Positions 2,361-54,525 of a stretch of DNA of 64,000 bases are shown piece by piece. Positions within the stretch are counted from its first letter, which is position 1; every line of letters starts with the position of its first letter. The translations under genes and the position numbers were made by a program. Source of the DNA: Sphyrna mokarran (taxonomy: Eukaryota); the NCBI GenBank assembly GCA_024679065.1, contig JAGIQG010000013.1:35030001-35094000 (forward strand), in the 5' to 3' direction. Below the pieces are notes generated by a model, which was given only the letters and a program-made list of their open reading frames with translations, was not told where the DNA came from and made no database searches.

Positions 2361-2523
2361 AGTAATGGAGAAGGGTGGGATTTTGGCTGTAGTATCATGG
2401 TATGTCAGAAATTAGAGTTTATTTCCACCATTTCCTTAATATAAAGTAACATGAAAGAATGAAAACTGCTGAATGTATAAGGTATAATTTTGAATATAGC
2501 ATATTTACATACCTCCTTTCATT

Positions 2524-2669
2524 TTAGTAGCCGATCTCAACGATTATGAAGTAACACATGAGCAGAACAAACAGAATATAGCGGACGACTGACAGATTGT
2601 TCAGAATAATTGCGGATTCTGCAATATAATCACATTGGATAATAATTCTGTAGCTGTAACTGGAATAAT
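2524..2669 (-). CDS. Connecting-peptide/transmembrane exon of the V-J gene (TCR-alpha/delta-like)
   Basis: tttttttag|AT TAT TCC... phase 1, encodes DYSSYSYRIIIQCDYIAESAIILNNLSVVRYILFVLLMCYFIIVEIGY*. Stalk Cys, NLSV, Arg in the hydrophobic segment. Donor AG|gtatgt at 2513/2512, 11 nt after the stop. Linkage to the V exon is inferred from strand and phase only. Confidence 0.7.
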
Positions 2670-2744
2670 CTAAAAAAATTGACAATTTGTTATTAGTCCA
2701 GTTTGCAGTAGCATATTCCACTTGAATTGGGAGGGACTGCAGGT

Positions 2745-3729
2745 TACATAGATGATCTGGAGGAAGGGGCAGAGTGCAGGGTGACGAAGTTTGTTGATGA
2801 CATGAAGATGAGTGAAAAAGCAAATTGCGTGGAAGGTGTGGAAAGCCTGCACAGGGATCTGGATAGGTTGAGTGAGTAGGCGAGGACCTGGCAGATGGAG
2901 TATAATGTTAGCAAGTGTGAGGTTATCCATTTTGGTAAGAATAATGGTAGGAAGGATTACTATTTAAATGGAGAAAAGCTGCAGCATGCGACGGTGCAGA
3001 GGGACCTGGGGATCCTTGTGCACGAATCGCAAAAACACAGTCTTCAGGTACAGCAGGTGATTAAGAAGGCGAATGCAACGTTGGCCTTTATAGCTAGGGG
3101 GCTAGAATATAAAAGTAGGGAAGTTCTGTTGCAGCTGTATAGGGTGCTGGTGAGGCCGCAGTTGGAGTACTGTGTGCAGTTTTGGTCGCCGCATTCAAGG
3201 AGGGATTTATTGGCCTTGGAGGGGGTGCAGAGAAGGTTTACTAGGCTGATACCAGAGATGAGGGCGTTGGATTATGAGGAGAGACTGAATAAGCTAGGTT
3301 TGTACTCTTTGGAGTTTAGAAAGCTGAGGGGGGATCTTATAGAGATGTATAAGATAATGAAGGGGCTGGATAGGGTAGAGGTTGAGAGACTCCTCCCATT
3401 TAGCAAAGATAGCAGGACTAGAGGGCACAGCCTCAAGATTAGGGGGGGGCAGTTCAGATCGGAGTTGCGGAGGGGTTTCTTCATGCAAAGGGTGCTGAAT
3501 CTTTGGAATTCTCTGCCTGATGAGGTGATGGAGGCTTCCTCACTGAATATGTTCAAGTCAAGAGTGGATAGGTTTTTAATTGACAAGGGAATTAAGGGTT
3601 ACGGGGAGAAAGCGGGAAAGTGGTACTGAATCACTACAGATCAGCTGTGATCTTATTGAATGGCGGGGCAGGCTCAAGGGGCTGTATGGCCGACTCCTGC
3701 TCCTATTTCTTAAGTTCTTATGTTCTTAT
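2745..3729 (+). mobile_element. 5'-truncated CR1 LINE
   Basis: ORF 2895-3629 encodes the CR1 ORF2 C-terminus (KCEVIHFG, LVRPQLEYCVQFWSP, RGDLIE, WNSLP); tail TTCTTA(A/T)G repeats. Confidence 0.9.
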
Positions 3730-6534
3730 CACAAGATTACAGCTCATCACACTTTATTTATTTCCAGATATAACTCAATGAATAAATATAGACTAATAAA
3801 TAATATCCCAAATAGTAAATACACGCTCCTGATCCAAGCTTCTTCAGAAATGCGGAATGTACCTTCAATCCAAATGTTTCTTTGTCATGCTGGATTATTG
3901 GGGAAAGATGAACCATACCCCATTTTTACAGTACTAGCTGCAATATTTTGGTAAGTATTCATTAACACTGAAAATCTGGGGGACATTTAAACAATTTTCC
4001 ATTCCAAACATGTGCAGGTTAGGTGGATTGACCATGCTAAACTTCCCCTTAATGTCAGGGAGACTAGCTAGGGTAAATGCATGGGGTTGTGGGGATAGGC
4101 CATTGGTGGGATTATGGTCAGTGTAGACTCTGTGGGCCGAATGGCCTGCTCCTGCAGTGTAAGATACTATGTGCGGGATTTTCTGCCAGCACTTGCCTTT
4201 AATCCGGAGGATTAATGGACTTTTGCATGATCCTCCCATCACCTGCTATAATTCCCATGCCGGGTGGGATTGGAGAATTCCGGCCTATGATTATATGACT
4301 GTAGTATTTGAGTGCTTGAGAGAATGGGTAAATATGGAGATGGGCTGAGAGCTGTTGTAAGGGGATAGAGTGATAGTTGGGTAGGGTGGCAGAGTTGCAG
4401 GTAGACTAAGAGTTAGTTGAGGAGGGGGGCAGGTGGTTAGGGTGGTGAGATAGGGTGGTCTGGTCAGGGATGAGGTGGGGGGTGTTGGAGGCATGGAGCT
4501 GGATGCTGGGAGGGTGTGGCTTGGTTGGGTCAGAGTGGTTGTTGGTGGGGTGTTGGGACAATCAGGGGGAGTCAAGTAGTGATATTGGTTCAGGTTTGGT
4601 CAGTGGATCTAGTAGGAGGGGTGGGGGGAGTGGGGGTTGGGTATCAGGATGAGTGATTGATGAGTCTATTATGCAGTGACCCAGGAATTTGATCAGGATT
4701 TTTTGTGTCTAAATCTTCCTGAGTAACTATCAAGGTAAGCCAATTGTCAGAAGTCTGAATAGAATTCAAGAGTTAAAGACCTTTGCTGAGGACCCTGGGA
4801 GCAGAGGAATAGTTCACTAGGAACTGGGTGCCTCACTCAGTTACATTGCCCTAAAACTCAGAAATTAAACCAGTATCTTGGAAAAAAATGGCTTTTTACG
4901 TCGTGTGGGTGTTTACTTCTAGATTTGTCATTGCTGGAAGACTTAAGGTACATCTTTCTGTTAATTCCCATTAAATCTTACAAAACATGTTTTTTTAAAA
5001 TCTCCTTTGTTGTACTGATCCCATTTGAAATCTTTGATCAAAGATGTTTGGGGCTCGCAGAGGTGCTACTGAGCTAGTTTGCCGTGCTGGCCTAGGAGCG
5101 CAATGAGCTGGGAGACTCAAGCTGAAGACGCGGAGCGGATTTCCTGCTGGGTGCACGGTCTCCACCCTTCTCCGGCCACCAGATTTCCGCTGCCATCAGC
5201 TCTGTGCAGAGCTGTGTAAATTATGCTATTGAACATTAGCATAGCATTTGCGGGCCGGGACTGAAGTTTCCAGGCTCGCTTGCATCTCCCACCACTCCCC
5301 CCGCCTCCTCCAGGGTTTCATTCCAGCAGGGTTTACAACACCTCCCCACTGATGGGGAACTGTCTGTCCATGTCTGCTGGAGTGAAAGGCGGCTATGGAG
5401 GCCCCCAGGAGATCGGGATTAAGGGGAGGTGCTCCCCTTGGCCATTGTCAGCTCAGCAGTGCCAGCCTGGCCCCCTGTCCGAGAGCCAAAGTGGTAATAC
5501 CTAGGGGCATCTTGGCACAGCCCACAAACCATCCAGCAGCACCAATAGGGTGGAACCAAAGCAGGGGCAGGACGTATGGGAGAGCTGGGGCCTGTGGTGG
5601 GGGGGGGGGGGGACATCAATGGTGTTAGGTGATCCCAGTGCCATTCTGCACTCAGTGGTGACAGAGGGAAGGAGACCAGCAATGGGCATGGCCATTGGGG
5701 TGGAAGGGGAAAGGGGCTCAGTGTGGAGGGAAGGTCAGGACGGCAGAGAGGGGGAGATGCCATCAAAGCTGTGGGGATGAATGGTTGGGAGATTGTGAGT
5801 GCGGAGGTGGGAGATCCAAGCGGACCAGTAGGGTGGGGAAAGTTGGGGCTTGCCCACATACTTCTGGGAAGTCAGCGATCAGGGTATGGGTGAGGGAGGT
5901 GGTGTGGGGGAGTTGGGGGTCGCATGGCCAGCGATGCAGGGTCATGGGGCTGGCCAGCAATCAGGAGGCTGGTGTACAGAAGTATTGGACTTGCATTGAT
6001 CTTGGCACATGAGCAGTGGCTGGCAATGCTTTGCTATCAGCCTCTGCAGTGGGAATTGGCTTCTAAATGAGATTGACGCTCGGGCTCCCTGCTGTGCACA
6101 GAGTGTGGGAGATTCATTTTGAAAAGTTCCATGGAAAAAATCAGCGGGATTCAATCCCGCTGAATCAGCGGGATTCAATTGAATTGAATTCAATTTCAAT
6201 TCGATTCAATTGAAATCGAAATTTCAATTTTGAATGGAAATTCGACAATTTGAATTCTTTTGGGAGAATCTCATCCAAGAATTTGGTGTATTTCTCAGAC
6301 TGATTCAAGCAGAGTCAGGCAACACTTTCTTTAAATTTTATTTATATCTCACACCGTATCCCACACACAATTTGTTTTCTCTGGCAAACGTTTGGTAGGC
6401 TATAACTCTGTGATTTTAGTTCTGCTTTGTCCCTTCCCATTTCTAATATATCCATCATTCCCCACTTCAAAAGTTTCCATCTACTACATAACTTATGATT
6501 ATGATAGAAGTCTAAAGAGTTAATTCCTATGGGG

Positions 6535-7775
6535 AACATAGAACACTACTGCACAAACAGGCCCTTCGGCCCACAAGTTGTGCCGATCACATCTATACCT
6601 ACCAGGCCATAGAACTATCTGTAACTCCCAATCCCATTCAATCCCATGTACTCATCCAGAAGTCTCTTAAAAGACCCCAGCGAGTGTGCTTCTATCACGA
6701 CTGACAGCAGCCGATTCCATTCACTCACCACTTACCTCTAACATCTCCTCTGTACTTGCCCCCAGGCATCTTAAACCTGTGTCCTCTCATAGTGACCATT
6801 TCAGCCCTGGGAAATAGCCTCCGAGAATCCACTCTATCTATTCCTCTCAACATCTTATAGACCTCTATCAGGTCACCTCTCAACCTTCGTCTCTCCAGGG
6901 AGAAGAGACCTAGCTCCCTCAACCTACCTTCATAGGGCATGCCTCCCAATCCAGGCAACATCCTTGTAAATCTCCTCTGCACTCTCTCAATAGCTTCCAC
7001 ATCCTTCCTGTAGTGAGGCAACTAGAACTGCACACAGTACTCCAAGTGGGGTCTGACAAGGTTCTTATAAAGTTGCAGCATTACCTCCCGACACCTAAAC
7101 TCAATTCCCCTATTTTTGAAGGCCAGTACACTATATGCCTTCTTGACCACATCCTCCACTTGTGGGGCAGATTTAAGAGTCCTATGGACCCAGACCCCAA
7201 GATTCTTCTGCTCCTCAACACTGCCAAGACTCCTATCCTTAATATTGTACTGCTTCGTCCCATTGGTTTTGCCAAAATGGACCACCACACATTTATCCGC
7301 ATTGAAGTCCATCTGCCATTTCTCCACCCAGTCTTGCATCCTATCTATGTCTCGCTGCAACTTCAGACATCCCTCCAGACCATCCACAACACCACCAACC
7401 TTTGTATCGTCGGCGAACTTACTAACCCATCCCTCCACTTCCTCATCCAGGTCATTTATGAAAATGACAAACAGTAAGGGTGCTAGAACAGATCCCTGGG
7501 GCACTCCACTGGTGACTGACCTCCATACAGAAGAAGACCCATCCGTAACTACTCTCTGCCTTCTGCAGGCAAGCCAGTTCTGGATCCACAAGGCCAAAGC
7601 CCCTTGGATCCTATGCCCTCTCACCTTCTCAAGAAGTCTTGCATGCGGGACTTTATCAAATGCCTTGCTGAAATCCATGTAAACCACGTTCACTGCTCTT
7701 CCTTCATCAATGTGTTCAGTCACATTTTCGAAGAATTCAACTAGGCTCGTAAGGCACGATTTCCCCTTTACAAAG
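6535..7775 (-). mobile_element. 5'-truncated CR1 LINE with an internal deletion
   Basis: ORFs 7022-7723 ([22 protein letters not shown]) and 6725-7021; 3' UTR and tail near 6535. Confidence 0.9.
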
Positions 7776-7811
7776 GGAAATGGAAACTAAATAAAAATAT
7801 AATGCACCTAC

Positions 7812-7841
7812 CATCATAATTTTTATTCTTCCGTGTAGCAA
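7812..7841 (-). CDS. Putative 30-nt hinge microexon of the V-J gene ((V)ATRKNKNYD)
   Basis: Branch-like CTAAT, strong pyrimidine tract tttctttctctaatctcatttttacag| and donor G|gtaggt. Phase 1 to 1, in frame with both neighbouring exons. Sits in a small island between TEs. Confidence 0.55.
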
Positions 7842-7969
7842 CTGTAAAAATGAGATTAGAGAAAGAAAGTATTTAGAAACAAACTTTTAACAATAAATAT
7901 ATGATAGGTTTAATCATTGCCAGGATTTTGATTCCATTCCTGTGATAGCCACAAGTACATAAATCATGA

Positions 7970-8308
7970 CACCTCCTCCACAAACATCCTCAACAACGGT
8001 GCCCCACAAGGTTGTGTTCTCAGCCCCCTACTATACTCCTTATACATCTATGACTGTGTGGCCAAATTCCCCTCCAACTCGGGTTTCAAGTTTGCTGACA
8101 ACACCACCGTAGTGGGTCAGATCTCAAACAATGATGAGACAGAGTACAGGAATGTGGTAGAGAACCTGGTGAACTGGTGTGGCAACAGTAATCCTTCCCT
8201 CAATGTCAACAAAATGAAAGTGATTGTCATCGACTTCAGGAAGTGTAAAGGAAAACAATCCCCTGTTTACATCAATGAGGACAAAGTAAAAAGGGTCAAG
8301 AGCTTCAA
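7970..8308 (+). mobile_element. Rex1/Babar-type LINE RT fragment
   Basis: GAPQGCVLSPLLYSLY..DCVAKFPSN..KFADNTTVVGQISNNDETEYR...LNVNKMK. Confidence 0.75.
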
Positions 8309-10156
8309 TAAAGAACGTCTTTCACTAGGATACTGTAGTTGCAAATCTTTATATAAGCTAAATTTGAGCTCAATACTTAGCCTCTGAAAAAACCCATACA
8401 CTAATCCTCCTGGGTTGCCACAGCAGTTGGGAAAGGACTGCAGTATGGAACTTACAAGGGCGATCTTATGCAAAAAATTTTAAGCTCAAGATCAAATAGA
8501 GTTTCCAATCCATTTTTTGGGTGAGTCCAAATTTGTGATCTTATGTAAAAAAAATCAAAAATGTTTCTTGCCTGTAGGGGGAGGGAGTGGAGCTTAAATC
8601 GTGTGAATGCTCCTTCAGAGCAACAGATGGCTCTATTGTGCATGCTTAAGTCCCTTTGCTCTGGGAGCCTCTGCTGCGCTCAATTAGCCTCCATGCTTTT
8701 ACAGGCACCTCCCTCCCCCAGCTACTGTGGGGACCGTGATCTATTGCAACTCGCAGTAGTCAAGCCCGCCCCTCACCCTGATTGGCCTGCCCCAGTCTGG
8801 CCCCACCCCTTGGCACAGCCCAGTGCCTAGTGGGGAGTGCCAGGATGCCAGCTTGGCACTACCCGACAGATAGAACATAGAACATAGAACATTACAGCAC
8901 AGAACAGGCCCTTCGGACTTCGATGTTGCGCCGACCAATATAAAAAGCAATGACCCTCCAAACTAAACCATTCCCTTCTCTTCCATATACTTATCAACTA
9001 ACCTCTTAAACGCCACCAAACTTGGCGCATCTACAACTGCTGCAGGCAGGGCATTCCACTCCCGAACCACCCTTTGGGTAAAGAACCTGCCTCTGATATC
9101 CGTCCTATAACTATCACCCCTTAATTTAAAGCTGTGTCCCCTCGTGCTAGTTTTCTCCATCCTAGGAAAAAGGCTATCACTGTCCACCCTATCTAAACCT
9201 CTAATCATCTTATATGTTTCAATTAGGTCCCCTCTTAGCCGCCTCCTTTCTAACGAAAACAACCTCAAATCCCTCAGCCTCTCTTCATAAGACCTGCCCT
9301 CCATACCAGGCAACATCCTGGTAAACCTCCTCTGTACCCTCTCCAATGCCTCCACATCTTCTTATAATGTGGGGACCAGAACTGCACACAATACTCCAAG
9401 TGCGGCCGCACTAGAGTTTTGTACAGTTGCAACATGACTTTGCGGCTCCGAAATTCAATCCCCCTACCAATAAAAGCTAAGACTCCATATGCCTTCTTAA
9501 CAACCTTCTCGACTTGACTGCCGACTTTCAGGGATCTATGCACATACACACCAAGATCCCTCTGTTCATCAAGACTACTAAGAATCCTACCATTAGCCCT
9601 ATATTCTACACATTTATTATTCTGCCATAGTGCATAACCTCACACTTTTCCACATTAAACTCCATTTGCCACCTCTCGGCCCAGCTCTGCAACTTGTCTA
9701 AGTCCCTCTGCAAACTATATCACCCCTCTTCACTATCTACCACTCCACCGACTTTAGTGTCATCTGCAAATTTACTAATCCATCCTTCAATACCCTCATC
9801 CAGATCATTTATAAAAATTACAAACAGCAGGGGCCCCAAAACAGACCCCTGAGGTACCCCACTTGTCACCGAACTCCACAATGAATATCTCCCATCGACC
9901 ACCACCCTCTGTCTTCTATCTGCTAGCCAATTCCTAACCCAATTAGCTAAATCACCCTCTATCCCATACATCTGCATTTTCTGCAGAAGTCTTCCATGGG
10001 CCACCTTATCAAACGCCTTACTAAAGTCCATATATACCACAACCACCTTATCCCCATCCACCTCTTTGGTCACTTTTTCAAAAAACTCAATGAGGTTAGT
10101 AAGGCACGACTTACCCTTCACAAAACCATGCTGACTATCTCCAATCAATTCATTTA

Positions 10157-10950
10157 GGTGGCAAATGGAGTTTAATGTGGAAAAGTGTGAGGTAATGCAC
10201 TATGGCAGAAATAATAAATGTGTAGAGTATAGGGCAAATGGTAGGATTCTTAGTAGTCTAGATGAACAGAGGGATCTTGGTGTGTATGTGCATAGATCCC
10301 TGAAAGTAGGCAGTCAGGTCGAGAAGGTTGTTAGGAAGGCATATGGAGTCTTGGCTTTTATTGGTAGAGGGATTGAATTTCGGAGCCGCACGTCATGTTG
10401 CAACTGTACAAAACTCTAGTGCGGCCGCACTTGGAGTATTGTGTGCAGTTCTGGTCCCCACATTATAAGAAAGATGTGGAGGCATTGGAGAGGGTACAGA
10501 GGAGGTTTACCAGGATGTTGCCTGGTATGGAGGGCAGGTCTTATGAGGGAGGCTGAGGGATTTGAGGTTGTTTCGTTAGAAAGGAGGAGGCTAAGAGGGA
10601 TCTAATCGAAACATATAAGATGATTAGAGGTTAGATAGGGTGGACAGTGATAGCCTTTTTCCTAGGATGGAGAAAGCTAGCACGAGGGGACACAGCTTTA
10701 AATTAAGGGGTGATAGTTATAGGACGGATATCAGAGGTAGGTTCTTTACCCAAAGGGTGGTTCGGGAGTGGAATGCCCTGCCTGCAGCAGTTGTAGATGC
10801 ACCAAGTTTGGTGGCGTTTAAGAGGTTAGTTGATAAGTATATGGAAGAGAAGGGAATGGTTTAGTTTGGAGGGGCATTGCTTTTTATATTGGTCAGTGCA
10901 ACATCGAAGGCCGAAGGGCCTGTTCTGTGCTGTAATGTTCTATGTTCTAT
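10157..10950 (+). mobile_element. 5'-truncated CR1 of the same family, inserted antisense into the host CR1 ORF2
   Basis: Near-identical reverse complement of about 8878-9674; ends in TTCTATGTTCTAT. The host rejoins as caattc-ATTT-ctctct, with ATTT at both junctions. Confidence 0.85.
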
Positions 10951-11659
10951 TTCTCTCTAAATAACTATAAATCCTATCCCTAATAATTCTCTCCAATACT
11001 TTGCCCACAACAGAAGTAAGACTCACTGGCCTATAATTCCCTGGAAGGTCTCTCTTCACTTCTTGAACAATGGGACCATATTCGCTATCCTCCAGTCCTC
11101 CGGAACCACACCCGTAACCAACGACGACCTGAAGATCAGAGCCAGAGGCTCTGCAATTGCTCTCTTGCCTCCCAGAGAATCCTAGGGTAAATCCCGTCCG
11201 GCCCAGGGGACTTATCCAACTCACAACCCTCAAGAATATCTAGCACATCCTCCCTATCTACTTCAATACTTTCCAGTTTGCAACCCTGTACCTCAGTGTT
11301 CTCCATAACTACATTTACATCACCCTGCGTGAATACCGAAGAGAAATATTTATTCAGTGCCTCTCCAATCTCTTCAGGCTCCACGCACAACTTCCCACTG
11401 CTGTCTATGACTGGCCCTAATCTTGTCCTAACCAATCTTCTATTCTTAACATATCTAAAGAAAGCTTTAGAATTCTCCTTAATCCTATCAGCCAAAGTCT
11501 TCTCGTGTCCCCTGTTAGCTCTCCTCAATTCACTCTTTAGTGAATTGGCTAATCTATAGCTATGATGTAAAGATGCCGGCGTTGGTTTGGGGTGGTAAGA
11601 ACTCAGTAAGAATTTAGCAACACCAATTTTTAATCCAACCGATTTATTTGATAGTAAAA

Positions 11660-11696
11660 TTGCGAGCTTTCAACACTCCATGTCTTCCTCAGGCAA
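11660..11696 (-). ncRNA. Second copy of the hammerhead ribozyme in the inverted PLE arm
   Basis: Reverse complement TTGCCTGAGGAAGACATGGAGTGTTGAAAGCTCGCAA; one substitution relative to the + copy. Confidence 0.65.
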
Positions 11697-12041
11697 ATGC
11701 AGTGTTCTGGTCTGCAATAGCACACATCAGCACAGACAGTCAGAGATTGCTGATTAGAATGCGAATCCTTACATCTAACCTGCTATTCAAGTGTTAAAGT
11801 GGCTAACAATGTGTGTGAAGGGAATCCTGAGCATTGATTAGAGAATTGTGTATTTTCTCCAGACAGCACAGTAAGTGAGGTTTTTTGCTCACCTCTTTTG
11901 CTAACCTTTTGCAAATTACGGGGGTTACAGACAGTGTGTCATGAAGCCAAGATCCCTGTTAAGACCGTCCTCATGTGTGCGGAGCTTGGCTATCAGTCTC
12001 TGCTCAGCGACTCTGCGCTGTCGTGTATCACGAAAGCCCCG

Positions 12042-13544
12042 GCTTTCTCCAGCTATATCGAGGGCATCCTGAAACCCATTGTACAAAGAACCCCCAGCTT
12101 TTGTCTTGACATTACGGACTTCTTACAGAAACTCAGCACACGTGGAGCAGTAGAACCAGGGACACTCCTTGTCACAATGGATGTCTCGGCGTTCTACACC
12201 AACATCCCCCACGACGATGGTATTGCTGCAACTGCCTCAGTACTCAATGCCAACAACTGCCAGTTTCCGGATGCAATTTTACAACTCATCCGCTTCATCT
12301 TGGACCACAATGTCTTCACCTTCAACAATCAGCTTTTCATCCAGACACACGGAACAGCCATGGGGACCAAATTTGCACCTCAGTATGCCAACATCTTCAT
12401 GCACAGGTTCGAACAAGACTTCTTCACCACACGAGATCTTCAACCAAGGTTATATACTAGATACATTGATGACATCTTTTTCCTTTGGACTCATGGTGAA
12501 CAATCATTGAAACAACTGTATGATGATATCAACAAGTTCCATCCCACCATCAGACTCACCATGGACTATTCTCCAGAATCAGTTGCATTCTTGGACACAC
12601 GCATCTCCATCAAGGACGGTCACCTCAGCACCTCACTGTACCGCAAACCGACAGACAACCTCACAATGCTCCACTTCTCCAGCTTCCACCCTAGACACGT
12701 TAAAGAAGCCATTCCCTATGAACAAGCCCTCCGTATACACAGAATTTGCTCAGATGAGGAGGATCGTGACAGACACCTCCAGACACTGAAGGATGCCCTC
12801 GTGAGAACAGGATATGGCGCTCGACTCATCGATCGACAGTTCCGACGTGCCACAACGATAAACCGCACTGACCTCCTCAGAAGACGAACACGGGACACGG
12901 TGGACAGAGTACCCTTTGTTGTCCAGTACTTCCCCGGAGCGGAGAAGCTACGACATCTTCTCCGGAGTCTTCAACATATCATTGATGACGATGAACATCT
13001 CGCTAGGGCCATCCCCACCCCCCCACTTCTTGCTTTCAGACAACCGCACAACCTCAAACAGATCATTGTTCGCAGCAAACTACCCAACCTTCAGGAGAAC
13101 AGTGACCACAATACCACACAACCCTGCCACAGCAACCTCTGCAAGACATGCCGGATCATAGACATGGACGACATCATCAAACGTGAGGATACCATTCACC
13201 AGGTGCACGGTACGTACTCTTGCAACTCGGCCAACGTTGTCTACCGAATACGTTGCAAGAAAGGATGTCCCGAAGCATGGTACATTGGGGAGACCATGCA
13301 GACACTACGACAGCGGATGAATGAGCATCGCTCAACAATCACCAGGCAAAACAGTTCCCTTCCTGTGGGCGAACACTTCAGCAGTCATGGGCATTCGGCC
13401 TCCGACCTGCGGGTAAATGTTCTTCAAGGGGGCTTTCGTGATACACGACAGCGCAGAGTCGCTGAGCAGAGACTGATAGCCAAGCTCCGCACACATGAGG
13501 ACGGTCTTAACAGGGATCTTGGCTTCATGACACACTATCTGTAA
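12042..13544 (+). CDS. Penelope-like RT-GIY-YIG polyprotein (N-terminally truncated, otherwise open)
   Basis: RT motifs VTMDVSAFYTNI, GTAMG, RYIDD, FLD; linker PCHSNLCKTC; GIY-YIG motifs NVVYRIRC...YIGET...RMNEH...E...GLN. Confidence 0.9.
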   Translation, partial: AFSSYIEGILKPIVQRTPSFCLDITDFLQKLSTRGAVEPGTLLVTMDVSAFYTNIPHDDGIAATASVLNANNCQFPDAILQLIRFILDHNVFTFNNQLFIQTHGTAMGTKFAPQYANIFMHRFEQDFFTTRDLQPRLYTRYIDDIFFLWTHGEQSLKQLYDDINKFHPTIRLTMDYSPESVAFLDTRISIKDGHLSTSLYRKPTDNLTMLHFSSFHPRHVKEAIPYEQALRIHRICSDEEDRDRHLQTLKDALVRTGYGARLIDRQFRRATTINRTDLLRRRTRDTVDRVPFVVQYFPGAEKLRHLLRSLQHIIDDDEHLARAIPTPPLLAFRQPHNLKQIIVRSKLPNLQENSDHNTTQPCHSNLCKTCRIIDMDDIIKREDTIHQVHGTYSCNSANVVYRIRCKKGCPEAWYIGETMQTLRQRMNEHRSTITRQNSSLPVGEHFSSHGHSASDLRVNVLQGGFRDTRQRRVAEQRLIAKLRTHEDGLNRDLGFMTHYL

Positions 13545-13770
13545 TCCCCGTCATGCAAAAGGTTAGCAAAAGAGGTTAGCATAAAACCTCACTTACTGTG
13601 CTGTCTGGAGAAAATACACAATTCTCTAATCAATGCTCAGGATTCCCTTCACACACATTGTTAGCCATTTTAACACTTGAATAGCAGGTTAGATGTAAGG
13701 ATTCGCATTCTAATCAGCAATCTCTGACCGTCTGTGCTGATGTGTGCTATTGCAGACCAGAACACTGCAT

Positions 13771-13807
13771 TTGCCTGAGGAAGACACGGAGTGTTGAAAG
13801 CTCGCAA
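13771..13807 (+). ncRNA. Minimal type-I hammerhead ribozyme in the PLE 3' region
   Basis: TTGC-CTGAGGA-A-GACAC(GGA)GTGTT-GAAA-GC-TC-GCAA: stem I, CUGANGA, stem II, GAAA, palindromic AGCU stem III and a UC cleavage site. AATAAA follows at about 13819. Confidence 0.7.
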
Positions 13808-14960
13808 TTTTACTATCAAATAAATCGGTTGGATTAAAAATTGGTGTTGCTAAATTCTTACTGAGTTCTAAACTATAGCTATCGATTGCACTAACTGAGC
13901 CTTCAAGCCTCATCCTAACATAAGCCTCCTTTTTCCTTTTAACCAGCGAATCAACGTTTTTCGTACACCAAGGTTCCCTTACTCGACCATTTCCTCCTTG
14001 TCTGACAGGGACATACTTATCAAGGACTCGCAGCAGCTGCTCCTTGAATAAGCTCCACATTCCAGATGTTCCCAGTTCCCAGTCAGTTCCAGACTAGTTT
14101 CCTAGTCCAATCTATACACCCTAATTCTCTCCTGATGGCCTCATAATTACCCTTCCCCCAGCTATAACTACTGCCCCAGCTTCATGCCTATCCCTATCCA
14201 TCACTAAGGTGAACGTAACCGAATTGTGGTCACTATCACCAAAATGTTCACTAACTTCCAAGCCTAACACCTGGTCTGGCTCATTGCCCAGCACCAAATC
14301 CAATGTAGCCTCACCTCTAGTTGGCCTATCTACATACTGAGTCAAAAAACCTTCCTGCACACTTTGTACGAAAACTGACCCCTCTAACGAGCTAGAGCTA
14401 TAGCTATTCCAATCAATATTAGTAAAGTTAAAGTCCCCCATAACAATTACCCTATTACTTTCACTCCTGACCAGAATTGACTTTGCAATCCTTTCCTCTA
14501 CCTCTCTAGAACTTTTAGGAGGTCTATAAAAGACTCCCAACAGGGTGACCTCTCCTCTCCTGTTTCTAATCTCAGCCCATACTACCTCAACAGACAAGTC
14601 CTCATCAAACTTCTTTTCTGTCACTGTGATACAGTCTTTGACTAATAATGCCACTCCTCCCCCCCTTCTACCTCCTTCTCTACTCCGACTAAAGCATTTG
14701 AACCCCGGAACCTGCAACATCCATTCCTGTCCCTGCTCTACCCAAGTCTCTGAAATGGCCACAACATCGAAGTTCCAGGTACTGGTCCAAGCTGCAAGTT
14801 CCTCCCCCTTATTGCGAATACTCCTTGCATTAAAGTATACGCATTTCAAACCATGCCCTACCCCACCCGTACGCTGCTGTGTTTTACAGCTTTCCTCTAT
14901 GACCCCCTTACTCTCATCCCTCTTAGCACCCCAACTACTTAGGATCCCACCCCCCCCGAA

Positions 14961-15884
14961 TCAGTTTAAAGCCCCCTGCATAGCCTTAGCAAATTTTCCC
15001 CCCAAGATATTAGTTCCCCTCTGGTTCAGGTGTAGACCATCTCTCTTGTAGAGGTCCCACCTATCCCTGAATGAGTCCCAATTGTTCAGGAACCTGAACC
15101 CCTCCCTCCTGCACCATCCCTGCAGCCACAAGTTCAAACATTCCCTCTCTCTGTCCTTCTCTAAACTATCCCTTGGCATAGGCAAGAGTCCAGAGATAAC
15201 CACTCTGCCAGTTTTGGCCCTAAGCTTCCACCCCAACTCCATAAATTTCTGTTTAATATCCCCTTCCCTTGTCCTTCTTATATCATGTGTCCCTACATGA
15301 ACTATGACTTGGGGCTGACTCCCCTCTCCCTTAAGAATCTTAAAAACCCGATCTGCGACATCCTGGACCCCAGCCCCTGGGAGGCAACACACCAGCCCTG
15401 AGTCACTTTTATTACTATTTACTCTCCTATCTGTCCCTCTAACTGTGGAGTCTCCAATTACTAGGCCCAATCTTTTATTCCCCCTACCCACCTGAGCATT
15501 CTCAGCAGGCTCACCCCCAGAGACCTGCTCCCTTTGGTCATCTCCAGTTGATTCTTCCTCAATTGTAGCCTCCAAGACAGAAAATTTGTTTTGGAGGGGA
15601 ACAGCCCCAGGGGATTGTCTACTCGATTGCTTCTTACCCCTCCTCCTAATAGTTACCCAAGAATCACTTTTAGGAGTGACTATCTCTTTGTTACTCCTGC
15701 CAATATCCTCCTCAACCTCTCGAATTACCCTGAGTTCCTCTAATTCCAGCTCCAGCTCCTTAACACGATCCGCAAGGAGCTGCAAATGTGCACACTTCCT
15801 GCAGGTGTAATCAGCAGGAACACTACTGGTGTCCCTCACCTCGTACATACCGCAGGAGGTGCAACGTACTGCCTGCACTACCAT
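14961..15884 (-). CDS. CR1 ORF1p: zinc finger/leucine zipper plus SGNH esterase, open 307 aa
   Basis: CTSC...CRKC followed by an LxxxxxxL coiled coil; esterase motifs VIGDS, HVGTHD and DGLH. Confidence 0.88.
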   Translation of the reverse strand: MVVQAVRCTSCGMYEVRDTSSVPADYTCRKCAHLQLLADRVKELELELEELRVIREVEEDIGRSNKEIVTPKSDSWVTIRRRGKKQSSRQSPGAVPLQNKFSVLEATIEEESTGDDQREQVSGGEPAENAQVGRGNKRLGLVIGDSTVRGTDRRVNSNKSDSGLVCCLPGAGVQDVADRVFKILKGEGSQPQVIVHVGTHDIRRTREGDIKQKFMELGWKLRAKTGRVVISGLLPMPRDSLEKDRERECLNLWLQGWCRREGFRFLNNWDSFRDRWDLYKRDGLHLNQRGTNILGGKFAKAMQGALN

Positions 15885-17541
15885 CCCTGATACTTTAATT
15901 TCCAGGAGAGAGAAAAAAAAACTTCCCACACACTTTTATTATTAGGTTAGAGGAGGGGGGAGGGTGGGATACTCTACCTGTGTAGAGTATCGGGTTTCCT
16001 CTCTGTACCAATTTATAGAGACAGAGAAAACTACAATCACCGGCAGCCTCCTAATGACGACTTCTGGTTTCTAGTTAGTTTAAATAAAAAACGGCAAAAA
16101 CTACCCCCGCTCACTATTTTAAACAAAGAGAAAAGTTAAAAACTACTTAACACTCAAACTTCACGCTCTCCCAAATCGCTGCCTCTCCGTGCTGCTCCAA
16201 GGGAACAATCCTTGGATATCACCCTCTTACTGCTGACCTCCCCGGGAGTCCTCAACAAGCCTTTGGTTCTACCGGCGAGGACATCATGTCTGGTTCCCCT
16301 TGCTGGGGATCAGTTGTGACCCTCACCGGAGAGAACCTCATCCAGCAAGGCCATAATGACATTAATGAGCCTGGACAATAATGTCCCAGGCTCACTAATT
16401 ACATTTAAATTATATTAAAATTCAATTTAAATAATTTATTCAGCCTTGCACTGGATATGGGAGTGAGATTGATCTTGTCAGATTTCTAGTGCCAGTAAGA
16501 TCACAAAAGACGAGAAATCAAGCACGAACCTAATTTCTTGGTGCAACCTTACCAGCTCGTCCCATCACCCCATGGGGCATGATAGTAAGATCGTCCCCTA
16601 CGGAACCATGTTTGCACTGATCTACAAGATGAGAGACTTTTAAAAACATTTAATCACATAACTGAAGGAATAATTATAATGACTGAGGCCCAGGTCAAAG
16701 GGTGGGCATGTGATAATCTCTTCAGAGATCTGATAGATAAAATTAAGTCTGACATTGAAGATTTGAGATTTTGAACCATTCCCCAACATTTGCCTCCCTA
16801 TACAAAATAAACTTTTTTAACATTCACCGAGACAAACATGAATTAATGATCACTCGACCGAATGGCAGTCCAGTGAAGGGGGCTACAAAATTTGTTTTGG
16901 TGCTCCCAGAGGAAAATATTTCCAAACACGGTTTTCAAGGACTGTTACAGATTTAAATCACTACGGACAGAAGAAGGTGGCTGGGTTCGCCGAGCCAGGT
17001 CTAAAGGATTTATGACCCATAAGGAGGATGAGGCACATTTGAGCACAACAGAATGCTGTTCAGAATCAGAACATTACATAGTGTGTTACTGTTGGATCGT
17101 TGAGCCTTGAGGGAACATCAGCTAGTTATTTACCATTGAAGGAAGCATTTAAAATAGTTCAGGTGGGCCCCATGCAATGGTACATGATCACACTGGAGAC
17201 AGAAATAATCTCTGGGGCTTTACTTTGTGAAAAGCAATCACAGCTTTGTTTGTCAATGACAGACTCATTGACTATGGGAGAGTTCCCTCTCCCTGGAAAA
17301 ACAAGAAGTTCCAAGCTTGGTGCCTGTTGGGATGACTCATTGTACGTTGATGAGACATTGAGGGAAGTGGTCTGACAGGCCATGCGAGAGGCTATGGAAT
17401 TTGTCCATTAATATATCAGACATTCCAAAGAAAAGATCCATAAGGTATGGATACAGATGAACCCAGACTGCCACTAGATCGAAACAATCAGGATTACACC
17501 ATTGGTGATATGAATTTGTTCCAAGAATGGCAGGAAATCAC

Positions 17542-17831
17542 CTAACTAAATGTGAGAAATAATCAGGATGTGGATTAACATAGAGACAAAGATAATGTTA
17601 TTGTGGGCCAGCACAATGTGCTATTAGTAAAGAACATTTGTTAAATTGGCAGATTTGGCAGTGTCTTGCTATGCTCCTATGCTATCCTGCAAAAAGGGAG
17701 AAAGGGGAAATTCAGAAGCTGAAATTTACAGCAGGGTATATTAGGAAAATGTCTGACATCTGGACAATCAGCCATCCAAAAGATTCAGAGAGGTGTTCTC
17801 ACCATCATATTGGTCTTTTTGGGTGGTCACT
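17542..17831 (-). pseudogene. Possible degenerate hinge microexon (17803-17831) plus TM exon (17542-17686)
   Basis: 29-nt ...GTG ACC ACC CAA AAA GAC CAA TAT GAT G|gtgaga (VTTQKDQYD, compare VATRKNKNYD). Then a strong acceptor ccctttttgcag| and a stop-interrupted DTAKSANLTNVLY**HIVLAHNNIIFVSMLIHILII. Confidence 0.3.
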
Positions 17832-19727
17832 CTAATGGCCAAAGGGTGAGAGGTGAAAGAGTTAATTATCCCTCAAGTTTAAAAATCACACAAATTGCAT
17901 TGGGAAGCCTCAGCATCATAGTGACTTTTGCTCTACCATATTTGTTCTCATCATTTCTTCTCATTCACCCGAAGAGCCTCCTCACTCTTTGTCACTGGGC
18001 CAAGATGATCACCAATCCAATACAATCATCTCAGTGGGTCCTCATGTGCAGTTAGCACGCTGGTGCTCCTATTGCTAGTTGCTGTCTTCCTTGTACTCAG
18101 GTACCTACCTACCTGTCCAACTGTGCTCGACAAGACTTCCCCCCCCCCCACTCTTCCCACTCAACTACCCCTGTAATTTCAGGAGAGCAGCTGTTTACTG
18201 CACAGCCCCTCACGTGTGCTACAGGAAAGTCATATATTTTCAAATGGATGAGACAGATCTCTTTGTGCCAGTCACTTGTGTACAGAGTCTAGGTAATTCC
18301 CTGAGGTGGACACGACCAACTCCCCACTGTGTGATTGTCTCCCTTCATCAGATCTGCCTTGGATAATGTATGCAGTCCATATGTCCTATGAAAATCTCAA
18401 CATCCCCATTAATGAGCTTAAGTTTTTTTGATGAGGCAATAGTGTCAATGAAGGTAATACAGTTGATGTGAAGTACATTAATTTCCAAAGGACATTTCAT
18501 AGATTACCACATAACAGGCTTGACTGCAATGTTACAGCTCATAAAATCAAGCAGGACATGGATATGAAATTGGCTGGGTGATCGGATACAGAGAGTAGTG
18601 GAGAATCATTGTTTATTTGACTGGAAGAGAGTACGTTTTTTTTAGGAGTCAGCTATTAGAACCACCGCTTTTCTTGGTATATTTCAATGCTTAGACTTGG
18701 CCATGCAAGGCGCAATTTCAAAATTCACACGTGACACAAAGCTCCAAAATATTGTAGCCTGTGAGAAAGTAGCGATAATCTTCCAGAGGAAATGGAAAGC
18801 TTCATTTAGTGGTTGCACACATAAAAAAGAGAAGAGTGAAGTAACACATTTTAGTAGAAAGAACAGAGAGGAACAATATAAAATAAGGATGCAATTCTAA
18901 AGAGAGTGAGAACGTGTGTGAATATGTGCAGAAATCATTCAACATAGCAGGGTTGGTTCATGAATTGGGTCAGCAAGCACCTGAGATCCTGAACTATATA
19001 AATAGCAGTGTGTACAACAAAGTTATAATTGAACCTTTATTAAGACACTGGGTCAACATTAATGGGCATATTGGTGAAAACTTTCTGCTCCTGTTCTGTA
19101 CGGGTAGGTTTGGGAGATGGAAGTGGAAAATCTTGCAAGAGGCCCAAATCATGTCTTTCTTTGACAGGTGGTGTCACCTCGATTGGCCCTGCCCCTGCCA
19201 CCCCTACTAGTTATGTAATGGGAATCCTGATATTCAACACTGGGACAGTCAGGATCTGAGTTGAAAACCCTGGCCTTTCAACAAGCTAATAAGATTCATA
19301 GGCAGAATACAGTCTTTAAGAGAACAGGGAAATCAGTAAAAAGTTAAATGATTATTAGGCAAGCTAATGCAAACAGCTTACACATATGTGAAGGCAGTAA
19401 GTGAATCATAACAGGCAGTTATGATTATAAAACATGGATGCTGATATTTTAAGTGTATTTTAAACGGATTATTCACTTTAGTCAAAGTTACAGAAAGGAT
19501 GGTGGTAAATGTCATTAGTTTAAAACCAGAAGTCTGGGAATCGGCTAGTCAGCATATTGGGAATTCCTATGAGGAAACATATTCTGCAACATTAATGAAT
19601 AGATGTATTCACTGCCCACACGCACACACACAAGGATAGAGGTGCCGCTGGATGCAGGAATACACGTCTATTCAACTTGGCAGTGAGCCGGTGGGGATGT
19701 TCACTTTGACCTTACGGCAGCATCTAC

Positions 19728-19870
19728 CTTGTCAGGCAACAGGGATGTAGTTAGAGCCAAGAAGAGAGGCTGTCAGGATTTAAAGGAGGAACAAAATATC
19801 ACCATGGTATTAAGTATCATATGTTCGGCTGCTGAGGTACTTGATGGAGATTTGCACTGATACATAATTA
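19728..19870 (-). pseudogene. Possible degenerate copy of the CP/TM exon
   Basis: tttaatttag|TA ATT ATG TAT CAG TGC...: VIMYQC...AAEHMILNTMV then (frameshift) ILFLL*ILTASLLGSNY, resembling IIIQC..AESAIILNNL..YILFVLL. Donor AAG|gtagat. Confidence 0.3.
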
Positions 19871-21341
19871 CTAAATTAAATTGATATTAATGAAAGGCAG
19901 AATTATTGATTAGGAAAAACTACATATGATCTGTATTTGATCACATAGTTTAGGTCTTTTGGAATAGTTCTGTAGCTCTGTTCCTAAAGCTGTTAATCAT
20001 TTGGAAGTCTCGGGTCAACTGTACGTTTGTTCTATATAAAATATATTTGTTGCATCTTTGCACAGAGATATTTGCCTTGTGTGTTTTGAATTGTCTAAGT
20101 TAAGATACAATTGGCCACCTTCAAATTTCCCCTCAACAGTCTTTCATGGTGTGCACACGACAGGAAAACCTCACAGATGAGTTCAAGTAGATGCATTACT
20201 CAGACAGGAGAAGGTCATGCCTAGGGAGTACCCGAGCAATAACAAGGGCAATGCCAGGGGGCAGACAGAGGGTTCCACCTGAACTTTTGTGCACTGGGGC
20301 AACTTTTATACATGGTCCTCTGATCTTCAAAAAACTGAATTGCTGGCAGAGTAGTCTCTGCCAAGCATTAAGTCGTGGGACCCACCCTGGAATTTTTTTC
20401 ATTATATTCCTAACAATACAGTGGAAAAGCCGTGGCTGGTGCTGATGGCTTCAATTCCACTTTTTCCATCTGTTGCAGTTCATGACAGTGTCAATAGAGA
20501 CTGTTCCCATTTGCCAATAGATTGAGAACTAGGGGAGACCAATTTAAGGTGAATGGCTAAAGAAGTGACATGACTTTGTGACTAGGACCTAGAATGCAAT
20601 TCAATGGTTTTTGAAAGGGAACTCAATAGCTATCTGAAGGGAAAACAATTTGCAAAGCTCCAGGAAAGAACAGGTAACCAGGACTAGCTGATTTGCTCTT
20701 GCAGAGAGCAGAATGAGGGATTTCTGTACAGCTGCATGCATTCTATAATCTGGGACTTATTGTGTACATCTCAATTTAAGGAATGGGCAGTTTAAACCAA
20801 ATGACATTTACTGCTGTTATTATGTTTTAATGTGATTGACTTTCCAAAAAGTAACTATACATAACTACAGATTACATTTCAAATAATTTTCCAAAAGTAC
20901 TAACTTATTAATATAAATCTCACTGGTATTACTGCTCTCGCCATTTCTGCAGCTACTTATATTTGATTATATCTGTTAACTCTAACACCGTAGAAAAAGC
21001 TATTAGTTAAATTCAAAGCTGAGAGATAGAGGACAAACTCTAATGAACAATGGCAGAATGGTGGAAATTATCTGGAATGTGTTACAGAAGTAATGTCCAG
21101 GTCGGAGGGAGTGCTACAGCATGAAAAGATTTCCCACACTATTTGTGGGGCAGCCTCTAATGATACCCTGAAGGGCCACTGACTGGATTCGCAGTCTGTT
21201 ACTAATGGTTAGACCATTGACATTGCATGCCAGGCTATTCACACATGAAAATTACAAACATGGTCCAACAACATATCTTCTTAATATCTAATCTATTGCC
21301 TAATCCAAACAACAAAGTTTCAATAAGATATCTTCCCTCAC

Positions 21342-21695
21342 CTTGAACAGTCAGATGACTCCCAGAGCCCACGATCTTCTTTAAAAGTGAACCTTTGTGA
21401 ATAAGGATGTTACAATAATACATCCCTGTGTCACTAATAAGAAGGTCCCTAATTCTCAATTTGCTGTAGAAAAATGTTGTGTTCACCCTGGACACAATGA
21501 TACGATCATCTTCCAACTCAGTAGTGATATTTCTCACATGTGTATCACCAAGTGTCACTTTAACGTAATGCCAATAGATACTGCCATTTGCCGCCTTGCC
21601 TTCATCCTGTAGAATGCAGTCGAAATAGGCAGTCTGGCCTTCCTGCAGCCGGAGTGTGGAGGGAAACTGTAGCCTCTTTGATCCAACAGCAACAC
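21342..21695 (-). CDS. Germline-joined V+J-type Ig domain exon
   Basis: ctgtaatag|GT GTT...GTT CAA G|gtgagg, 354 nt, open. Translation CVAVGSKRLQFPSTLRLQEGQTAYFDCILQDEGKAANGSIYWHYVK...SKLRIRDLLISDTGMYYCNILIHKGSLLKKIVGSGSHLTVQ. Contains B-strand Cys, C-strand Trp, DxGxYYC and a J-like GSGSxLTV. Confidence 0.93.
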
Positions 21696-21826
21696 CTATT
21701 ACAGAACAACCTCATTAAAATGTTGAAGATAGCTACAAAACTTCAATGTAAGTTATAATAAATCTGCCACAATATTGAGAGCGATTAATCAGATACATTA
21801 CTTATATCTGGAATGAATATACTTAC

Positions 21827-21860
21827 AGGCTGCAAACAAAAGCAATGTGGCAAGCATCAT
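21827..21860 (-). CDS. Leader exon of IgSF V-J receptor gene
   Basis: ATG ATG CTT GCC ACA TTG CTT TTG TTT GCA GCC T|gtaagt = MMLATLLLFAA. Phase-1, 131-nt intron, as in antigen-receptor V leaders. Confidence 0.85.
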
Positions 21861-46788: not shown

Positions 46789-46835
46789 ATTATGCAAATT
46801 GCCACCCTTTTGACCTCCATCCTTTGTTAACTGAC

Positions 46836-46950
46836 CTGTACGTGTTGTCCCTTTACACACACACATCCCACATATGTGCCTGATACACGCGGAGTGTACG
46901 TAAAACAGTATGTTCCATCATGATTGTCCTGCATTTTGGTCTTGAGTGCG
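46836..46950 (-). CDS. TRIM45: TRIM45 coding exon 4 (filamin repeat)
   Basis: ttcatacag|C GCA CTC...GTA CAG|gtcag. Encodes ALKTKMQDNHDGTYCFTYTPRVSGTYVGCVCVKGQHVQ (filamin DNxDGTY motif); 115 nt, phase 2 to 0. Confidence 0.93.
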
Positions 46951-47214
46951 CTGTATGAAAGAGGACCAAAATATTCACCATAAATACTTTCATTCAGTTG
47001 AAAAATGAATTACTACGAACCTATGCACACAATACATTCCGGAGGTTCTCTGTCTCAAAATGTAAGGTGAGCAACCAGTCTATTTTCGATATGTAACACA
47101 GAAGGCTCCTTTAACATTCAGAACTTTAGTTCAATATTCCCACCATAAATTTTAAACACAGTAGTTCATCCAATTCTTTAACTCTTACACAAGCAGCACG
47201 ACAGGTGGCAAGTT

Positions 47215-47560
47215 CAGGGAGATTGAAGGGGCGACCCAATAGAGGTTTACAAAAGTGTAAGAGGCATGGATAGAATGGATAGTTGGAGTCTTTTTCCCAG
47301 GTAGAAATGTCAATTACTAGAGGACATGGTTTTAAAATAAAAGAGGGAAAGTTTAAGCAAGATGTGAGAGACAAGTCTACACAGAGGATGGTGAGTGCCT
47401 GGAAAGCACTGCCAGAGAAGGTGATAGAAGCAGATACAATTGCAACATTTAAGAGGCATCTTGAAAGATATACAAATTGGCAGAGAATAGGGGGATGCAG
47501 ACTGACTGGAGACAAAAGATTTTTAGTTTAGAAAGATGTCATGTGCCAGCACAGCCTTGG
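47215..47560 (+). mobile_element. CR1 3' fragment
   Basis: TRGHGFKIK...WKALPEKVIEADTIATFKRHL. Confidence 0.75.
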
Positions 47561-49145: not shown

Positions 49146-49275
49146 CATTCTTTATTCTTCTTGTTGAAGATGCTAACCCGAATGGATTCGTCTCCTTTCC
49201 CCATCTGCTTCCCCGATTGATCATTACAAATCAGTACAAACACACTTGGTTGGTCTTGACGAGCCACATGGAGGC
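49146..49275 (-). CDS. TRIM45: TRIM45 coding exon 3 (filamin repeat)
   Basis: ttcag|GC CTC CAT...GAA TG|gtgag. Encodes GLHVARQDQPSVFVLICNDQSGKQMGKGDESIRVSIFNKKNKE; 130 nt, phase 1 to 2. Confidence 0.92.
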
Positions 49276-53940: not shown

Positions 53941-54525
53941 GTGGCACGGTGGCACAGTGGTTAGCACTGCCATTTCACAGCGCCAGGGGACTCAGGTGGA
54001 ATTCCGACCTTGGGTCACTGCCTATGTGGAGTTTGCATGTTCTCCCTGTGACTGTATGGGTTTCCTCTGGGTGCTCTGATTCCCTCCCATAGTCCAAAGA
54101 TGTGTGGGTTAAGTGAATTAGCCACAGTAAATTGCTACTTAGCATTAAAGAAACGAGCTAGAGTAAATGCACGGAGTTATGGGGATAGGGCCTTCTGGGA
54201 TTATGATTGATGGGCCGAATGGCGTACACTATATTTTGGGTGGCACGATGGCCCGGTGATTAATACTGCTCTCTCATAGCACCAGGAACCCGGATTCAAT
54301 TCTGGCCGCTGGTCATTATGCAAGCTCCACACAGACATTTTCCCCATGTGCGTGGGTTTCCTGCCACAGTCCAAAGATGTGTGGGTTAGGTTGATCGACC
54401 ATACTAAATTGACTCTAGTGTCAGTGGCACAAGCTGAGTAAATACATGGGGTTATGGAAATGGAGCCTGGATTATGTTGCTGCAGATGTGATGGGCTGAA
54501 TGGCCTCCTTCTGCACTACAGGTAA
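53941..54525 (+). mobile_element. Two tandem tRNA-derived V-SINEs
   Basis: GTGGCACGGTGGCACAGTGGTTAGCACTGC head (A box) with V-core gagtttgcatgttctccc...ggtttcctc; second head at about 54238. Confidence 0.8.

Follow-up and report, generated by a model that had tools for sequence, protein, structure and literature searches.

A candidate non-rearranging VJ receptor gene beside a TRIM45-type gene in galeomorph sharks

A stretch of 64,000 nucleotides (nt) of the Sphyrna mokarran genome (contig JAGIQG010000013.1, positions 35,030,001 to 35,094,000; hereafter the window) carries on its minus strand an exon in which an immunoglobulin variable (V) domain runs straight into a joining (J)-like strand. 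What protein does this exon belong to, and which of the known receptors does it resemble? Genes that hold V and J in a single exon are a recognised kind, and three papers place NKp30, PRARP, UrIg, UrIg2, SIRP, CD8, CD79 and NITR among them (PMC12227049, PMC10751288, PMC11599192). Two of these papers describe a search for relics of the antigen-receptor precursor among the VJ genes of the major histocompatibility complex (MHC) and of its paralogous regions (PMC12227049, PMC10751288). An earlier note, made from the window sequence, had described the locus as a non-rearranging gene with a T cell receptor (TCR)-like V domain joined to a stalk and transmembrane segment in the style of TCR alpha/delta. 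Our analysis indicates that the locus is a real four-exon gene of galeomorph sharks, with a predicted product of about 170 amino acids (aa), or 187 aa if a longer acceptor is used. We favour, at a probability of roughly 0.5, the reading that this product is a C1-less, tail-less, non-rearranging VJ receptor of sharks, probably dependent on an adaptor.

The gene lies on the minus strand of the window, which contains no N and has a G+C content of 41.7%. Its parts are listed below in the order of transcription, with a slash at the splice site.

21827..21860, minus strand: coding part of exon 1, with ATG at 21860, a hydrophobic signal-peptide leader (MMLATLLLFAA) and the first base of a split codon; donor CAGCCT/gtaagt.
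21696..21826, minus strand: intron 1, 131 nt, phase 1, read directly.
21342..21695, minus strand: exon 2, 354 nt, a whole V-set immunoglobulin (Ig) domain plus the J-like G strand IVGSGSHLTVQ; acceptor ctgtaatag/GT, donor CAAG/gtgagg.
7812..7841, minus strand: exon 3, a micro-exon of 30 nt, phase 1/1, encoding (V)ATRKNKNY(D), a short basic stalk; acceptor tttttacag/ and donor ATGATG/gtaggt, both strong.
2619..2669, minus strand: optional 5' extension of exon 4, entered from the long acceptor (AG at 2671-2670, behind a T7 tract); it adds (D)YSSYSYRIIIQCDYIA, including a stalk Cys, and its frame is open.
2524..2618, minus strand: conserved coding part of exon 4, entered from the short acceptor (AG at 2620-2619); it encodes (E)SAIILNNLSVVRYILFVLLMCYFIIVEIGY and ends in a stop at 2526-2524.
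2418..2423, minus strand: probable poly(A) signal AATAAA, about 100 nt past the stop codon.

Direct reading of the minus strand recovered the leader, the 131-nt phase-1 intron and the 354-nt V-plus-J exon at the coordinates listed, in agreement with the earlier note. The exon regions are single copy within the window. Introns 2 and 3 measure 13.5 kb and 5.1 kb, respectively, and both are swollen by retroelement pieces. When the last exon is entered at 2669, the coding parts add up to 34 + 354 + 30 + 146 = 564 nt and 187 aa; both this count and the phase compatibility of the micro-exon with the last exon, as first proposed, hold arithmetically. Entry at 2618 yields 513 nt and 170 aa. Homology searches were run exon by exon and never on the joined model, with the Mustelus protein described below as the full-length proxy.

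Two side observations concern the exon edges. If the donor of the V exon is left unspliced, the frame stays open for 34 more codons in 21238-21341 (minus strand), encoding GEGRYLIETLLFGLGNRLDIKKICCWTMFVIFMCE; a read-through product of this kind would end in a short hydrophobic stretch. In addition, the optional part 2619-2669 (..YRIIIQCDYIAE) and the start of the conserved part at 2590-2618 (SAIILNNLSV), both on the minus strand, look like a small tandem duplication, with AATTATT common to the two at the DNA level.

Exon 2 matches the Pfam V-set model with an E value of 1.8e-8 (35 bits against a cut-off of 26). Its translation covers 117 codons without a stop and contains the Cys-Trp-Cys core of V-set domains, formed by Cys26, Trp41 and the Cys94 of DTGMYYC, which is followed by NILIHKGSLLKKIVGSGSHLTVQ up to the splice donor; the residues directly before the donor are ...KIVGSGSHLTVQ. 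No heptamer of a recombination signal sequence (RSS), either CACAGTG or CACTGTG, is present in 21001-22100. Since the V exon reads through the J strand into a donor and no RSS was found there, V and J are fused in the germline, and the exon appears to be spliced as it stands. This bears out the claim that the gene does not rearrange and that one exon holds both V and J. In TCR alpha/delta, by contrast, separate RSS-flanked V and J segments are joined by RAG, whereas the shark gene has one VJ exon and no heptamer.

The earlier note had proposed database searches, and these located an orthologue. An exhaustive HMMER search of 1.84 billion representative sequences with the V exon as query returned 53 proteins at E<=0.001, two of which were close. 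XP_078088791.1 from Mustelus asterias (uncharacterized protein LOC144506486, 171 aa) matched the V exon at an E value of 7.4e-57 with 83% identity, and XP_043556870.1 from Chiloscyllium plagiosum ('T-cell surface glycoprotein CD8 beta chain-like', 171 aa) at 6.6e-27 with 46-49% identity. The V exon is kept across shark orders at this latter level with all hallmark residues intact. The J-like strand motif G.G..L..Q is invariant in the three shark sequences (window, Mustelus and Chiloscyllium), and two sequons, NGS and N[IV][ST], are common to them.

The Mustelus protein maps colinearly on all four exons of the window, with matching boundaries. In the leader, 11 of 11 full codons specify the same residue, and 97 of the 117 residues of the V exon are identical. 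Past the V domain, Mustelus residues 130-139 (VAARKNQNYE) fall on 7842-7813 (VATRKNKNYD, 7/10 identical), and residues 140-171 fall on 2619-2527 (tblastn E 4e-9), where 24 of the 28 aligned residues are identical and the alignment contains one single-codon gap. Between the V exon and 2670, a distance of 18.7 kb, there are 58 open AG-30nt-GT phase-1 cassettes, and 719 cassettes of 15-60 nt. With 58 comparable cassettes, the micro-exon could not be selected from the window alone, and its support comes from the Mustelus orthologue: across the six frames, no other 10-mer agrees with the Mustelus peptide at 7/10 positions, the other three of the four matches of at least 5/10 having 5/10. In the last exon, a run of 16 residues, SVVRYILFVLLMCYFI, which includes the Arg, is identical to Mustelus. 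At the 83% identity of the V exon, the chance of such a run is about 0.83^16 = 0.05. This identity, together with the whole-codon indel, argues for a sequence-specific helix and not a mere hydrophobic plug.

The Mustelus comparison and the hydropathy profile also agree with the hydrophobic C-terminal exon, conserved Arg and virtually absent tail that had been noted earlier. The hydrophobic segment has a Kyte-Doolittle mean of 2.51 over 19 aa in the window and 2.09 in Mustelus, and it is followed by 4 and 2 residues, respectively. The conserved Arg is positioned about 3 residues in from the outer end of the helix, and a conserved Glu about 4 residues from the C-terminus. The stalk is made of the 10-residue micro-exon plus 8 residues, or plus 25 with the long acceptor.

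To which V domains is this one closest? In a single-sequence search of the PDB, the best match was TCR alpha V-J (E 1.3e-6), followed by shark VNAR (1.8e-6) and NKp30 (7.8e-5). With a profile built from the three shark sequences, TCR alpha V-J chains took the best ten places (top E 2.3e-8), and NKp30 scored 2.3e-5. Describing the V domain as TCR-like is therefore apt as far as its best solved-structure matches go. Beyond the shark orthologues, the best single-domain match was XP_029433897.1 (P0041; 37 bits), a 'SIRP alpha-like' protein of the caecilian Rhinatrema in which V and C1-set (Pfam 6e-11) domains are followed by a membrane helix and by a long tail that contains several tyrosine motifs. 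A0A8C5P6H9 (P0031) of the frog Leptobrachium is a V-V-C1 protein (C1-set, Pfam 2e-8) of similar architecture. These amphibian V-C1-transmembrane receptors have, like the shark gene, a V domain with a J-like GxG strand, whereas their C1-set domain, uncharged helix and long tyrosine-motif tail are all missing from it.

A quick tree was built from 89 V domains, namely that of the window and 88 of 370 domain hits; the other 282, which had less than 8 bits or covered fewer than 76 profile positions, were dropped. Deep support in this tree is weak, and the sample contains only proteins matched by the shark V query. The window sequence pairs with XP_078088791.1, with a support of 98 in the Shimodaira-Hasegawa-like approximate likelihood ratio test (SH-aLRT). 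The three shark sequences, XP_029433897.1 and both V domains of A0A8C5P6H9 form one clade (SH-aLRT 86), which stands apart from the shark multi-V families, the TRAV-like array and the fish V-V proteins. Because the sample consists of the query's own matches, the tree is silent on Ig, other TCR chains, NCR3, CD8, PRARP and UrIg. A likeness to the SIRP family emerges from the Atlas, in which the clusters nearest to XP_043556870.1 are SIRP-like (SIRP-alpha-like 0.96 and SIRP-beta-2 0.95), with PD-1 at 0.94.

The shark multi-V proteins, automatically named IGSF2-like, IGSF3-like or SIRP-alpha-like, owe their high rank in the V search to summed weak domains of 14-25 bits each. Members of this family in Chiloscyllium plagiosum (P0005, P0032, P0060 and P0062, named IGSF3-like, SIRP-alpha-like and perlecan-like) lie on a contig of 105,880,166 bases, and XP_043556870.1 lies on one of 88,215,405. 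Since the contigs differ, the multi-V family is not linked to the receptor gene in that species.

We searched the window for a C1 domain and for a partner gene. Outside the retroelements, no stop-free minus-strand segment of at least 95 aa, the size of a C1 domain, was found. In the introns and the downstream flank, the 20 stop-free segments of greatest length gave no Ig-family or otherwise meaningful Pfam match, and the sole match at E<=1 was to a non-Ig domain (E 0.065). The C1, transmembrane and tail parts of XP_029433897.1 and A0A8C5P6H9 had no tblastn match in the window. When 66 Ig superfamily (IgSF) proteins were compared with the window by tblastn, 95 high-scoring segment pairs were obtained at E<=0.01; the V exon accounted for 94 of them and the last exon for the remaining one. 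No second Ig exon and no gene for a partner turned up in the 64 kb. That the 13.5-kb intron conceals a C1 exon is rejected, with no open segment of C1 size, no Pfam match and no tblastn match to suggest one; the earlier statement that an intact C1 exon is lacking accordingly stands. A paralogous V domain or decayed partner was also considered at 23189-24120 and rejected. Its 12 stop-free segments on both strands gave no Pfam Ig match, and none of the 66 IgSF proteins matched there at E<=0.01; the only matches were two weak ones on the plus strand, at 23224-23376 (E 1.5, crossing a stop) and 23958-24020 (E 3.6).

The adaptor-dependent VJ receptor that we favour would be built from a signal peptide, one germline-joined V domain of VJ type with two or three N-glycan sites, a short stalk and a C-terminal helix with Arg and Glu, with no cytoplasmic tail. 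Its V domain would bind the ligand. A chain with no cytoplasmic tail would be unable to signal by itself. An Arg placed close to the outer end of the membrane helix is characteristic of receptors that assemble with FcRgamma, CD3zeta or DAP12, such as NKp30, SIRPbeta and TCR alpha. By analogy, the buried Arg of the shark chain would pair with an acidic transmembrane residue of an adaptor of the FcRgamma, CD3zeta or DAP12 type, and this pairing would also be required for the chain to arrive at the surface. We infer the membrane topology, adaptor pairing, expression and immune function of the shark gene.

Several observations weigh against this reading. The C-terminus of XP_043556870.1 is not hydrophobic (its highest Kyte-Doolittle mean over 19 aa is 0.66), which leaves the membrane end documented in just two species, fairly close to each other. 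Part of the identity of the 3' exons to Mustelus could reflect recent common ancestry and not constraint. Only two relatives were found among 5.8 billion clusters, in word-indexed searches that covered proteins of 0.55-1.75x the query length and are blind to longer or shorter kin. Both XP_078088791.1 and XP_043556870.1 are automatic predictions, and the splice junctions and expression of the gene are likewise predicted from sequence alone. Finally, the predicted helix ends at the C-terminus with an acidic residue and no basic residue on the inner side, which departs from the positive-inside tendency of type I membrane proteins and resembles a glycosylphosphatidylinositol (GPI) signal.

This last point leads to the main rival, in which the product is a GPI-anchored single-V protein of the Thy-1/CD160 type. 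The hydrophobic end would then be a cleaved GPI signal, and the mature protein would lack the transmembrane Arg. The position of the hydrophobic segment, 4 residues before the C-terminus in the window and 2 in Mustelus, suits such a signal, as does the lack of basic stop-transfer residues. Small residues (S, A, N, N, S) are located just upstream, and N-L-S in the window suits, by eye, the rule that an attachment site has small residues. The size, single Ig domain and hydrophobic, tail-less C-terminus also match those of Thy-1 and CD160. However, the candidate site N-L-S reads N-L-Q in Mustelus, and by eye no other clean site is common to both species. GPI signals usually keep hydrophobicity only, yet here the run of 16 residues agrees with Mustelus letter for letter, its Arg, Met, Cys and Tyr included. 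Thy-1 and CD160 further differ from the shark gene in that these GPI-anchored proteins are not known to have a J-like strand, and neither is among the best 60 PDB matches listed. We regard a GPI anchor as unlikely, while taking it more seriously than any of the other alternatives.

It is improbable that the gene is a decaying or silent relic, or that its true 3' end lies elsewhere and exons 3 and 4 are prediction artefacts shared by close genomes. Such an account could draw on the 58 open 30-nt cassettes that occur by chance, on the different, non-hydrophobic tail of the Chiloscyllium protein, which also has no micro-exon, and on the retroelement pieces that fill the 13.5-kb and 5.1-kb introns. 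Nevertheless, all four exons are open and have good splice sites, and the sole indel relative to Mustelus is in frame. The micro-exon is a unique best match, and AATAAA follows the stop. The conservation of the V exon between shark orders, at the identity given above and with every hallmark residue present, also speaks against decay.

The choice of acceptor for the last exon bears on another alternative, one close to the original proposal. If the long acceptor at 2669 were used, the stalk Cys could form an interchain disulfide, and the product would be a TCR-alpha-like chain in a covalent dimer, left over from the pre-RAG antigen-receptor precursor. The acceptor at 2669, behind its T7 tract, looks stronger in this genome than that at 2618, and the frame from it is open; with the better-looking acceptor upstream, the product may have 170 or 187 aa. 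The tail of the Chiloscyllium protein bears a weak likeness to the long form, with a score reached by 22 of 2000 shuffles, and TCR alpha V-J chains are the best ten PDB profile matches. The Mustelus model, on the other hand, enters the last exon at the equivalent of AG 2620-2619, so that the exon starts at 2618 and not at 2669 as had been assumed. Nothing in XP_078088791.1, the sole orthologous model with a membrane end, corresponds to the 17 extra codons of the long form, that of the stalk Cys among them, and a disulfide-linked dimer is thus left without support. With the whole open frame as target, the Chiloscyllium likeness is weaker, its score being reached by 175 of 2000 shuffles. In Mustelus, the NLSV of the window, part of the proposed TCR-alpha/delta-style stalk and transmembrane segment, is replaced by NLQSV. 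The last exon, translated to 47 aa, had no PDB match at E<=10, a weak test with so short a query, and no partner gene was detected in the window. With no PDB match and NLSV unconserved, the likeness to the TCR alpha stalk and transmembrane segment is a resemblance by eye with no detectable relationship. We consider the covalent dimer quite improbable.

That the gene is a shark CD8 beta chain, as the automatic NCBI name of XP_043556870.1 would have it, can be dismissed as extremely improbable: CD8 beta is a single VJ-type domain protein and is counted among the joined-VJ members of the IgSF (PMC11599192), but no CD8 chain is among the best 60 matches listed in either PDB search, the 64 kb hold no CD8A or second Ig gene and have a TRIM45-like neighbour, and the long Cys-bearing stalk and basic tail of CD8 beta are missing from the shark gene.

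How does the proposed receptor compare with the described VJ proteins? TCR alpha provides the best structure match to the V-J domain, and a helix Arg and almost no tail are found in both. TCR alpha differs in having a C domain and an Arg-Lys pair, neither of which is present in the shark gene, and its stalk and transmembrane segment have no sequence match there. NKp30 (NCR3) resembles the predicted shark chain in its one germline VJ-like domain, short stalk and helix Arg, and it signals through an adaptor. It differs in its cytoplasmic tail, and its V match is weaker than those of TCR alpha and VNAR. NCR3 is MHC-linked (PMC10751288, PMC12227049), whereas the shark gene lies beside a TRIM45-type gene.

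PRARP was reportedly described by Fu et al. in 2019, and VJ-C1 genes of the MHC paralogous regions, it is said, by Ohta et al. in the same year. PRARP and the VJ-C1 genes are non-rearranging, have a single-exon VJ and are discussed as relics of antigen-receptor precursors (PMC10751288), all of which recalls the shark gene. The same source gives PRARP as a VJ gene in the MHC (PMC10751288), whereas the shark gene is beside TRIM45 and has no C1; the two are set apart here by description, not by sequence. A signalling tail, attributed to PRARP and VJ-C1 proteins (PMC10751288), is not found in the shark protein, which ends 4 residues past its hydrophobic core. UrIg and UrIg2 are likewise shark non-rearranging VJ genes, located in the MHC or in a paralogous antigen-receptor complex (PMC12227049). 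That paper presents them as long V-C1-C2-C3 proteins that form antibody-like, disulfide-linked dimers (PMC12227049), whereas the shark gene would encode about 170 aa with a V domain and a membrane segment; this comparison, too, is made by description.

The gene has been annotated automatically in two other sharks and is unnamed and unstudied as far as we found. No description of a VJ gene beside TRIM45 in sharks was found in the literature searched, the scope of which did not include the original PRARP, VJ-C1 and UrIg papers and their supplements. Single-exon VJ genes of the MHC and its paralogous regions are looked for as witnesses of the gene that was split by the RAG transposon (PMC12227049, PMC10751288). 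The present locus suggests that a gene of this kind is retained beside TRIM45 in galeomorph sharks, reduced to a V domain and a charged, tail-less helix. If expressed, it would provide a natural model, in minimal form, of receptor assembly that depends on an adaptor; it would also be a marker with which to follow VJ genes on the chromosome-1-type paralogue, and a candidate partner for a B7-like ligand. If silent or merely GPI-anchored, it would be one more orphan IgSF gene. A bolder proposal, which we regard as a long shot, is that the gene represents a third kind of shark non-rearranging antigen-receptor relic, beside UrIg (MHC) and UrIg2. It would be a TCR-alpha-like VJ on the TRIM45/VTCN1 block of the chromosome-1-type MHC paralogue, stripped to a V domain and a charged helix, that acts as an adaptor-coupled receptor for a B7-H4-like ligand. 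In mammals, B7-H4 is not known to have an established receptor. Were this proposal true, a linked pair of B7 and VJ receptor like B7H6/NKp30 would exist, and VJ genes would be found on three MHC paralogues.

The upstream neighbour of the receptor gene is a TRIM gene on the same strand, with the following parts.

46830..62480, minus strand: TRIM45-type gene, upstream neighbour, on the same strand as the receptor gene.
62004-62480, minus strand: exon with RING and B-box (Pfam zf-RING_UBOX 1.4e-7, zf-B_box 7.9e-10).
56930-57664, minus strand: exon with B-box and a weakly supported coiled coil (TRIM_CC E 0.0076, 16.5 bits, under the cut-off of 30).
46830-47009, minus strand: exon with a filamin repeat (Pfam Filamin 2.7e-7).

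The location given in the earlier note, beside TRIM45, is thus right in the sense that the receptor gene is downstream of a TRIM gene whose Pfam domains show the TRIM45 architecture. We take this gene to be a putative TRIM45 on the strength of its RING, B-box, coiled-coil and filamin architecture.

Several retroelement pieces were recognised, including two inside intron 2. At 11898-13544 on the plus strand, a 548-aa open frame combines a reverse transcriptase (3.9e-10) with a GIY-YIG nuclease (3.9e-4, just under the cut-off), a pairing typical of Penelope-like retroelements. At 13710-15929 on the minus strand lies the 5' part of a non-long-terminal-repeat retrotransposon, in which a first open reading frame (ORF1) with a GDSL esterase-type domain (1.6e-8) is followed by an apurinic-type endonuclease (4e-20). 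More reverse-transcriptase fragments are present at 7025-7723 and 9723-10148. A G/C-rich stretch at 43500-44730 contains long Gly/Trp- or Pro-rich open frames on both strands.

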